Shown here: positions 53,601-56,600 of the stretch, one piece after another
How the letters are laid out: every line of letters begins with the position of its first letter
Position numbering within the stretch: the first letter of the stretch is position 1
Assembly: GCA_964199315.1 (NCBI GenBank)
Contig: OZ116702.1
Span: forward strand, 3,720,001-3,784,000
Length of the DNA stretch: 64,000 nt
DNA from: Orbicella franksi
Taxonomy: Eukaryota
Direction: 5' to 3'
Notes under the pieces: generated by a model
What the model saw: only the letters and a program-made list of their open reading frames with translations
Told to the model about the DNA's origin: nothing
Databases searched by the model: none
Program-made: the position numbers and the translations under genes

Positions 53601-56600
53601 ATATTTCATGTTTAGCAAAGGAAGCCTTTTTGGAGCCTAGGGACTCAACTTGTGAGGAGTAGCTAGAAGGGTGGACACTCCCTCTGGATTGGATCTGCTA
53701 TCCCCTTGCAGGTTGCACTCCACAGTATTATGATTTATTGCCTACAGCTGGCAATTTGCTGTTACCTATAAATACTCCCCTGTGGAGGCATGATGGTCTC
53801 ATGGTTAGTGCGCTGGACTCCAGATCAAGCAGTCCGGGTTTGAGCCCTGGCCGGGGACATTGTGTTGTGTTCTTGGGCAAGACACTTTACTCTCACAGTG
53901 CCTCTCTCCACCCAGGTGTCTAAATGGGTACTGGCAAATGTAATGCTAGGGGTAGCCCTGCAGTGGACTAGCATCCCATCCAGGGGGGATTATAAAAACT
54001 CCCAGTCATTTAATGCCTAACAGGGATAAGCTCTGACCATTTGGATCAATTGGCATGACGCATGCTTTGCTATAAATTCTCCTGTGTAGAGAGAGGTACT
54101 GCTAAGGTTACAAACATGCCACAATGACTCTGTACAAGACGCAAATCCAGACCTCTCAATTGATGGAATCCACTGGTTGTCCACAAGGCTGTTAGTTTTG
54201 AAATTAATTTTCTTCCTCTTTTTGATAGCAGAAGATGAGAACCCTGAACCGACACAAAATGAATTAGTAAATGAAACCAAGTAAGTAAGACTTTTATAAA
54301 CAGACTATCGCCAGTTTTGTTTAATTGACATTTAACATCATATCTACCATGAGGTGTCTCTTTTTGGAATGACTTTCAAGAAGTCTAGGGACTGGATGAC
54401 AAAATATTTCTCATATTGATGACAGGGCTCTCATTAAGGGCCGTAACCCATCGTAACACCTGTTACAGCTCTATATTCTTGATTTTCCCTGGATGCTACA
54501 GGTGAAATTGCCTGTTGTTGATAGAATTCACCCACAAAGTAATAAGTTTGCTACGGGTCTGGAGAGGCTACAGGTGACTCAATACTTAATGACAGCCCTG
54601 GGTGGGGTGGGGCCCTTTCACTGTAACAAGAAGGTGCGTCCTTTCTGCACAACTTCATGGACAGACTGTTTTAGTTTTGTGCTATTTTATTTTATCGTCA
54701 CAACATATAAATGAATTTACAACCAAATAAGAGCTTAATCTAAATCTTACAAAAAGGGGTATTTTTCTTTGGCCACCCATCCAAGTAATAACCCTGCTGA
54801 ACAGGGAAGTTTGGTGGTTCAAAACGACTTTGATTAACCTCCTGGCAAGGGGGAAACAGCTTTCAAATTTTGAAATTAGAGGTGAAAGTTTCCAAGTGAA
54901 GATACAGTTTCCGAGATGCAGGAAAAGATTACCTTCAAATGTAAGAAAAAGCCCAAAATATTTACCAACTGAAGGTAGAAAAACGCCTAATAGGCAAGAT
55001 CAAAACAAAAGGAACAAGGATGGGTAACACGGATTTCGAACAGCTTTCTTGAAAAATGCACGCAGTTTTTTCACAACACAACATGTGTAAGTGATGTCGC
55101 TTCTTTATGATTACCTCACTGGAAGTTGCTTAGCCTCAGGTCATTCCCACTGCAAGCTGTATAGTTCCCTGGCGCAGTACAGTACACTAAATACTTAAAA
55201 GGCTGTCGTTTTTGCGGCTTTTTAGTGTGTGATCCCAGTATGATAGGGTTCCTTTGATAGGGTTCCTTTAAATTGTATTAGCAAAACACCGCAGTAGATA
55301 TACGCCCAGTTAGATGAACAAGATATGTTCTGCTTCGTCAAGCATTCTATGTTTAATTCCAAACATCCCATGCAACAGAAAGGAAATCTAAACGGCATGT
55401 TTACTTAATTCTTAGTTTTTATCTTTTCCTCTGAATAGGGTGCCATTATTCAGATTTCGGCCGTCACGTTCGCTAGATAATCCTGGAGTTTTACTGTAAC
55501 GTTTAACTTTTTTTTTTTGGTTTTCACAGTAAACTTCGGGCCCAGTTAGGACTGAAGCCATTGTTACTAGAAGATAAACCCGACACTACTAAAGCTATAA
55601 CAGCAACAAATATCCACAAAAAGGCAGCTGAAACTGTTTCTCCCAGCTCTCGAGTGAGTTGGTTCTATTATGTTTTGCTTGTAAAACATTTTTCAGTATG
55701 TATCTTTTGTTACATTTTAACGCGCGGTAACCTCAACAACCTTTGCCGATCTCTGTCTTCATGTTGGCTTCCCCAATGCCTGGCCAATCACGTGCCATTG
55801 TTGAACCTTTGATTGGCTGAGAAGGTTGGAATATCAAAAGGGAGATACCAGGCGCTTTCCATTCACCCCAAAATTCCGAAACTTTTGAAAAGGGGGGAAA
55901 CTTCTTCGGAAAGGTTCTGGAAAATACCAAAATTGTTGCAAAACGAGAACCACTCATTCTAAACTGCCAGCAATTCCGGGATGACAATCAAATGGAGCAG
56001 AAATTCTCGTTAAGAAATTATCGAAAATTTGGGTATAGCTCGCAAGATTAGCCTCTTTTCCGGAAATTTCCAGACCAACTCCAAAAGTTCCGAATGGAAA
56101 ACGCCCAGGAACGCAACTGAATCATATATAGGATGGCTAGCATTCTTAATCACGATGCAGAGGAGCTAGGGGGATGGTGCAGGGGTGCGCGCACCCCCCC
56201 TTCCCTTCCTGAGATGAAGCCTTCTTCGCTTTTAAAATCTGTTTACCTCACCAGTCAGTTACGCCATTCCTTATTGGTGCACCTCTCCTAAGAAAAATCC
56301 TGGATCCGCCGTGCGATGTTTGTTTAGACTCTTATAAACGCTTGCGCTTAGTCCAGCATCGATAGTAAAAAGAAGGTTAAACTTGAAAATAATTAAATCT
56401 TACTAAAACATCTGATACCTCATCTCTCTTTCCACAGAATCAGAATATATTGTCCGCAGTTCTTACTTTGGTTCAAGAACTGGACCGCACAAGCCTTCTA
56501 AGTCTTCGCAAAGAAATTGACCAGCAGCTACAAGATTACGATGAAACAGAAAACGAGTCTCTAGAGGAAAATGCGCCCTTAGAGCACAAAGAAGTACTAG

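Follow-up and report, generated by a model that had tools for sequence, protein, structure and literature searches.

A HIND-class motif split by an intron in the linker of coral CFAP410, a predicted docking site for UBL5

The window analysed here, a stretch of 64,000 nucleotides from the stony coral Orbicella franksi (contig OZ116702.1, positions 3,720,001 to 3,784,000 of the forward strand), raises the question whether HIND, the Hub1/UBL5-interaction motif, also occurs in a protein of the basal body. UBL5/Hub1, an unusual ubiquitin-like protein, works solely through non-covalent binding, and HIND is the one docking motif that is well defined for it. Its hosts have been described as limited to Snu66/SART1 and Prp38, both spliceosomal (PMC4141198, PMC7615767), a paper from 2022 still names only Snu66/SART-1 and PRP-38 as hosts (PMC7615767), and according to one paper clear HINDs apparently do not occur outside spliceosomal proteins. 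In the window, the gene for the basal-body protein CFAP410 (C21orf2) encodes a linker peptide which, judged from its sequence, qualifies as a genuine motif of the HIND class, in a host family that is new and non-spliceosomal. We assign a probability of about 0.72 to the reading that the linker HIND of coral CFAP410 docks UBL5 in the same way as SART1/Snu66 does, a physical binding that we infer.

The spliced coral protein matched the Pfam HIND family (PF19252) at residues 194-208 with 30.7 bits (E 1.9e-7), the curated gathering cut-off of this family being 25 bits, and the near-perfect HIND claimed in a preliminary description of the locus was in this respect upheld. When residues 170-240 were compared with all chains in the PDB using phmmer, only human SART1 and yeast Snu66 were returned, both on their HINDs. 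The coral peptide was paired with residues 117-138 of human SART1, SLSIEETNKLRAKLGLKPLEVN, and 13 of 14 residues were identical across ETNKLRAxLGLKPL (SART1 122-135), so both the human sequence and the count in the preliminary description proved correct. Likewise, the Arg to which the salt bridge had been attributed was located: Arg200 of the coral protein is aligned with Arg127 of SART1, the residue that pairs with Asp22 of Hub1. The structure of human Hub1 with a Snu66 HIND peptide was solved by Ammon et al. (PDB 4PYU; PMC4141198). In this complex the peptide is helical and contacts Hub1 through L118, I120, T123, L126, R127, L130, L132 and L135 of human Snu66, and binding is abolished by either R127A or Hub1 D22A, the R127-D22 salt bridge being essential (PMC4141198). 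The coral counterparts of the eight contacts are E191, V193, T196, L199, R200, L203, L205 and L208, of which six (Arg200 and five of the seven hydrophobic contacts) are identical to SART1, one is conservative and one is different. The Asn, Gly and Pro that shape the helix of the SART1 HIND are also present in the coral peptide.

That the gene in the window is the coral orthologue of CFAP410 is not in doubt. Its nearest named relatives are CFAP410 orthologues across the full length and the profile search extends across animals. The N-terminal domain had Pfam matches to LRR_4, LRR_8 and LRR_9, the top match in the PDB was 8axj_A (E 9.6e-25), and the C-terminal block encoded by exon 10 could be aligned with the one conserved in all orthologues; the Pfam family CFAP410_C (PF22800), however, gave no match as good as E 1 on the coral protein. 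The layout is an N-terminal leucine-rich repeat (LRR) domain, a disordered linker of about 95 residues and a predicted C-terminal helical domain. In a single-chain AlphaFold2 (AF2) model obtained with a 61-sequence alignment (mean predicted local distance difference test score, pLDDT, 81.7), the LRR region (residues 1-140) had a pLDDT of 92-97 and the C-terminal helices at 235-250 and 255-281 had a pLDDT of 93-96. Within the linker, a helix was placed at residues 189-202 with a pLDDT of about 88, flanked by residues 164-185 and 214-233, both with a pLDDT below 50. The modelled helix matches what would be expected from a motif folding on binding within a disordered linker, and it matches the helical peptide in 4PYU.

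In the genome the motif is interrupted by an intron, and its existence depends on the junction between exons 8 and 9. The gene was reconstructed from open reading frame (ORF) fragments, splice signals and tblastn of a homologue as ten exons on the + strand, reaching from the start codon to the stop codon (50680-56608, about 5.9 kb), with GT-AG introns throughout and a coding sequence of 885 nt (294 aa) after splicing (Table 1). Exon 8 ends with ...GAA ACC AA at 54280, followed by the donor gtaagt, and exon 9 starts after the acceptor ...ttttcacag with T AAA CTT CGG GCC CAG TTA GGA CTG AAG CCA TTG at 55530. The preliminary description had joined exons 8 and 9 at 54280/55530, and both the rebuilt 10-exon model and an uninterrupted ORF on a transcript agree with this; its exon numbering is correct in the full model and the motif bounds it gave are exact, 54261 falling on the first base of the Glu codon of ELVNETN and 55563 on the last base of the Leu codon of KPL. 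The transcript, a 1231-nt Logan contig of run SRR31374347, carries an uninterrupted ORF (52-936) for a protein of 294 aa (P0001) that equals the spliced protein of the window at 293/294 residues, the sole difference, K171N, being in exon 7. Given that a 1.2-kb contig carries the full ORF of a 5.9-kb gene, this contig represents spliced mRNA. The joined motif was also present on about 12 further coral transcript contigs of about 1 kb and in several NCBI gene models. Based on the transcript contigs, the 54280/55530 junction is used in mRNA.

We considered whether exons 8 and 9 might belong to a different gene or to a mis-joined model, and this was rejected given that the spliced coding sequence corresponds to the full-length transcript protein. 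The Pocillopora damicornis model P0031 (pdam_00014826) runs past the donor into the intron that splits the HIND (NETKYVELYRPKCLSKLRAQ); the deposited protein contains no intact HIND and has no Pfam HIND match, the error in the annotation falling precisely on this junction. The motif had been said to be invisible in the ORF track, and a relaxed regular expression indeed gave no match in the six-frame translation of the unspliced window. This absence, the Pfam E-value and the conservation across phyla described below led us to reject a chance match.

Orthologues were surveyed by a library-wide phmmer search and by a profile search whose matches came with names and precomputed Pfam hits. The motif was found at the same linker position in stony corals, sea anemones (Actinia, Nematostella) and an octocoral; in scallop, abalone, a caenogastropod snail and an annelid; in sea urchin, brittle star and three hemichordates; in amphioxus and a tunicate; and, among vertebrates, in five sharks and rays, a teleost, three frogs, turtles, crocodile, lizard, eleven non-passerine birds, both monotremes and six marsupial entries. 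Across the motif-bearing orthologues that were scored, the Pfam HIND scores ranged from 25.6 to 43.4 bits (amphioxus 43.4, the annelid Dimorphilus 41.3, sea urchin 40.4, the snail Batillaria 37.0, frog 36.7, duck 36.5, dunnart 35.9, echidna 31.7, the coral of this window 30.7, Actinia 27.6 and shark 25.6). Conservation in other invertebrate orthologues, for which the preliminary description had proposed a scan, was thus found at 27.6-43.4 bits in Actinia, snail, urchin, annelid and amphioxus. Weaker variants of the motif, below the Pfam cut-off, were present in three metatranscriptome clusters (P0064, P0076 and P0093).

The linker had been described as otherwise variable. Among 18 non-redundant metazoan orthologues the majority-residue frequency was 0.57-0.83 at residues 190-210, compared with 0.56-0.88 in the LRR; over most of the linker it was 0.10-0.34, with 0.41 for the block that directly follows the motif, so the motif forms a conservation island in the linker. 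In vertebrates the CFAP410 motif, LEETNKIREQLGMKPVP, is strikingly near HIND-I of yeast Snu66, IEETNEIREKLGMKPIP. The 14 core residues differ at only four positions from sharks to marsupials, mostly conservatively, with ETNKIRE[EQ]LGMKP kept by marsupials, monotremes, parrot and falcon, and the conserved block of vertebrates reaches past the HIND (PRDKFSSF).

The intron that splits the motif is also shared. The Asn codon is split after its second base both in coral (ACC AA/gt...ag/T AAA) and in duck (L002; acc aa/gtgagc...ag/c aaa), and in amphioxus (L001) the donor has the same position and phase in the Asn codon (aca aa/gtaagg). The motif is therefore orthologous and at least as old as the cnidarian-bilaterian ancestor. 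A coral-specific acquisition was rejected based on the phyletic distribution and on the intron phase that is shared. None of the matches could be assigned to sponges, ctenophores, placozoans or choanoflagellates. In the amphioxus locus (Branchiostoma floridae CM022901.1, 3932-4261 of L001) the exon with the first half of the HIND (IAVTLEET) is found three times with a spacing of 153 nt, as either a tandem triplication or an assembly artefact.

The motif has also been lost. The Pfam HIND was absent in 31/31 named placental-mammal entries listed by the profile search, including the afrotherians Chrysochloris and Tenrec. Where the region can still be recognised in placental mammals, it resembles EETSIQSQLSLKPP, in which Gln has taken the place of the key Arg; the Arg is replaced in every placeable placental entry but one, the bat Pteronotus. 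The motif is eroded further in rodents than in other placentals, and CFAP410 of orangutan and seal gave no HIND match whatever. In two bats, Pteronotus (P0304, KGSHIRGQLGLKPP) and Desmodus (P0280, EEARAEGRLSLKPL), an Arg is found near the old salt-bridge position, which may be a back-mutation; the remaining motif is degenerate in both, with no Pfam HIND match, and Pteronotus lacks the ETN. The Pfam HIND was similarly absent in 4/4 passerines, the oscines having ETNKTQEEL (Arg to Gln, 13.6 bits) and the suboscine EANRIEEEL (Arg to Glu). The closest relatives in the sample, marsupials and monotremes for placentals and parrot and falcon for passerines, retain the motif. It was absent or below threshold in the hydrozoan Clytia, heterobranch snails, a tubeworm (19.5 bits), a shrimp and a tick and, among the non-animals sampled, absent in Corallochytrium, the green algae Chromochloris and Trebouxia, and Diphylleia. 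In the two well-sampled losses, those of placentals and passerines, the replaced residues include the salt-bridge Arg, and decay of the remainder follows, as would be expected if this Arg is the functional linchpin of the motif. Because the motif is degenerate in placental mammals, a link between UBL5 and CFAP410 would not be expected in human or mouse, and the loss in placentals and songbirds probably accounts for the absence of the motif from the literature searched.

In the mechanism that we propose, residues 190-210 of the linker (core about 195-208) constitute a short linear motif of the HIND type, which would fold into a short amphipathic helix and dock non-covalently on the helix-alpha1/beta1-beta2 face of UBL5/Hub1. 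Arg200 would pair with Asp22 of UBL5, and the hydrophobic contacts would come from Val193, Thr196, Leu199, Leu203, Leu205 and Leu208, by analogy with SART1/Snu66 in the solved complex. In yeast, a HIND moved to other proteins of the tri-small nuclear ribonucleoprotein particle (tri-snRNP) restores Hub1 function (reviewed in PMC8431670), and given this portability the peptide should therefore suffice for binding. If the coral protein assembles into a tetramer like its homologues, each CFAP410 particle could present as many as four flexibly tethered docking sites for UBL5. Bound UBL5 might be brought to the basal-body/NEK1 module or act as a stabilising cofactor of CFAP410, or its other face might serve as a bridge to partners. 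Each of the two proteins has on its own been connected to the response to DNA damage, CFAP410 together with NEK1 and UBL5 together with FANCI, which UBL5 has been reported to stabilise. That UBL5 binds, the stoichiometry proposed for it and any role in cells are what we infer from these data.

Several observations weigh against a docking of UBL5 by this motif. The contact position Leu118 of SART1 is Glu191 in coral, and the high confidence of the AF2 helix could also reflect an intramolecular contact. UBL5 has mainly been described as nuclear and spliceosomal while CFAP410 is at the basal body, and their co-localisation is therefore hypothetical. Furthermore, loss or decay in placentals, passerines, Clytia, heterobranchs, shrimp and tick implies that the role of the motif is dispensable or replaceable.

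The alternative that survives best, which we nevertheless regard as unlikely, is that the linker helix serves another partner or an intramolecular contact, with a patch on its own LRR or with the C-terminal bundle, and that its likeness to HIND is convergent. A pLDDT of about 88 in a single-chain model at times signals docking on the own chain, and the conserved block of vertebrates exceeds the HIND (PRDKFSSF), but the residues that are kept are those of SART1 that touch Hub1 plus the helix-shaping Asn, Gly and Pro, and the vertebrate form is as near to yeast Snu66 HIND-I as described above. An identity in such detail would be difficult to account for if the surface bound were not the same, very conserved one. 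It is also in favour of this alternative that the known partners of CFAP410 (NEK1 and others), which bind elsewhere, are incompletely mapped (PMC11865075); even so, an exposed peptide with a HIND sequence would be expected to bind UBL5 anyway.

It is less probable again that the motif binds UBL5 in vitro and has no dedicated role, being an evolutionary relic or a weak, freely lost cytoplasmic sink for UBL5. The core has been kept from sharks to marsupials and between cnidarians and bilaterians while the nearby linker is largely unalignable, which is a signature of purifying selection, and decay after loss of the Arg implies that the intact motif was maintained; these points stand against the repeated independent losses (Eutheria, Passeriformes, Clytia, heterobranch gastropods, a crustacean and a tick) and the reported ciliary and DNA-repair roles that human CFAP410 still has in the absence of the motif, both of which would suit a relic. 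An artefact, in which unrelated exons or exons of another gene were joined to give a chance match, is hardly credible and is refuted by the 885-nt ORF running uninterrupted on the 1231-nt contig, in agreement with other coral transcripts and NCBI models, by the Pfam score over the cut-off and by the intron position common to coral, duck and amphioxus, even though the motif exists only after splicing, out of sight of the ORF track, and is not intact in the P. damicornis model, which merely reads into the intron.

With UBL5 docking as the preferred reading, the motif can be compared with the known HINDs. The core, the salt-bridge Arg and the predicted helix are alike in coral and in SART1/Snu66 (PF19252; 4PYU, spliceosome entries 5O9Z/6AHD), whereas the host is a tri-snRNP protein in one case and a basal-body LRR protein in the other. 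The HIND of SART1 is located near the N-terminus beside the RS domain, in contrast to the CFAP410 motif in an internal linker between folded domains, and unlike in SART1/Snu66 the predicted UBL5-binding motif of CFAP410 is probably present in four copies via the tetramer. PRP38/PRPF38A of plants, Plasmodium and C. elegans also carries a HIND that recruits Hub1/UBL-5 (PMC4141198, PMC7615767, PMC8431670), and this is a precedent for the same portable motif on a different host, as in CFAP410. PRP38 is a tri-snRNP protein and fits the view of HIND as a spliceosomal recruiter, but CFAP410 does not. The CFAP410 motif therefore departs from the literature pattern of a U4/U6.U5 tri-snRNP host (Snu66/SART1, Prp38), which is a pattern of occurrence and not a property of the motif.

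CFAP410 has been described in human, Trypanosoma brucei and Chlamydomonas (PMC11865075, PMC11500688). According to Stadler et al. it is bimodular, with an LRR that binds NEK1 and other partners and a long disordered loop connecting it to a C-terminal helical bundle that tetramerises and targets the basal body (PMC11865075). The coral protein is predicted to have the same bimodular architecture. The CFAP410 papers, which compare mammals, trypanosomes and algae, treat the loop as featureless, whereas coral and most of the sampled metazoan lineages carry the motif in it. Two of the lineages in those comparisons, placental mammals and green algae, had no HIND in the present sample. In the papers that were searchable, no link was found between CFAP410/C21orf2 and HIND/UBL5, nor a relevant one between UBL5 and the basal body, and the lack of an earlier description in a ciliary or basal-body protein, as asserted beforehand, holds for this literature. 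A Pfam HIND hit is already precomputed on CFAP410 proteins in public collections, and the novelty is in recognising and interpreting the motif, not in detecting it.

Table 1. Features of the CFAP410 gene and of the remainder of the window (positions in the window).
Feature	Position	Strand	Remarks
CFAP410 exon 1	50680-50759	+	
CFAP410 exon 2	50871-50889	+	
CFAP410 exon 3	51101-51147	+	
CFAP410 exon 4	51331-51368	+	
CFAP410 exon 5	51632-51817	+	
CFAP410 exon 6	52460-52569	+	
CFAP410 exons 1-6	50680-52569	+	N-terminal LRR domain with cap (aa 1 to ~140) and start of linker
CFAP410 exon 7	53162-53219	+	
CFAP410 exon 8	54229-54280	+	52 nt; last 20 nt (54261-54280) = ELVNET and AA of the Asn codon
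CFAP410 intron 8	54281-55529	+	1249 nt, phase 2, GT...AG; interrupts Asn codon of ETN/KLR
CFAP410 exon 9	55530-55653	+	124 nt; 55530-55563 = third Asn base and second half of HIND
Arg200 codon	55537-55539	+	CGG, exon 9; predicted salt-bridge residue
CFAP410 exon 10	56438-56608	+	predicted C-terminal helical domain and stop codon
ORF fragment, CFAP410 intron 5	51930-52089		translation similar to that in intron 9
ORF fragment, CFAP410 intron 9	56133-56291		translation similar to that in intron 5
Related ORF fragment	47601-47735	+	pair in opposite orientation
Related ORF fragment	48588-48836	-	pair in opposite orientation
812-aa ORF	58228-60666	-	intronless; SID-1_RNA_chan
490-aa ORF	61963-63435	+	RVT_1
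Run of N	33663-33849		187 N

Exons 6 and 7 of CFAP410 add up to 168 nt, and an in-frame junction of exon 5 with exon 8 is possible; an isoform that skips exons 6 and 7 would have a shorter linker and keep the HIND. The similarity between the ORF fragments in introns 5 and 9 suggests copies of one interspersed repeat, and a related pair of fragments lies upstream of the gene. Directly downstream of CFAP410, on the opposite strand, an 812-aa intronless ORF matched Pfam SID-1_RNA_chan (the SID-1 family of double-stranded RNA-gated channels, E 1.9e-32); a single-exon SID-1-like gene is unusual in an animal genome. The 490-aa ORF contains a reverse-transcriptase domain (RVT_1, E 1.1e-20) and is probably a truncated ORF2 of a retrotransposon without long terminal repeats (non-LTR). 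The run of N is an assembly gap or a masked stretch.

CFAP410 is a human ciliopathy gene, and in its widest form the proposal is that HIND is not restricted to the spliceosome and that an ancient metazoan CFAP410-UBL5 complex, at least as old as the cnidarian-bilaterian ancestor, consists of a tetrameric scaffold with four docking helices for UBL5 that would tie UBL5 to the NEK1/CFAP410 module of cilium and DNA damage, a connection that would have been cut independently in placentals and passerines and hence stayed unseen in work on human and mouse. We regard the odds for this wider proposal as even. If true, the conserved HIND in CFAP410 would be the first non-spliceosomal client of the UBL5 docking interface, and a single Arg would give a concrete, mutable handle on roles of UBL5 outside splicing. 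The pattern of retention and loss also tells which organisms could be used for such work: chicken DT40 cells, zebrafish, Xenopus and Nematostella would be suitable, and human and mouse would not.

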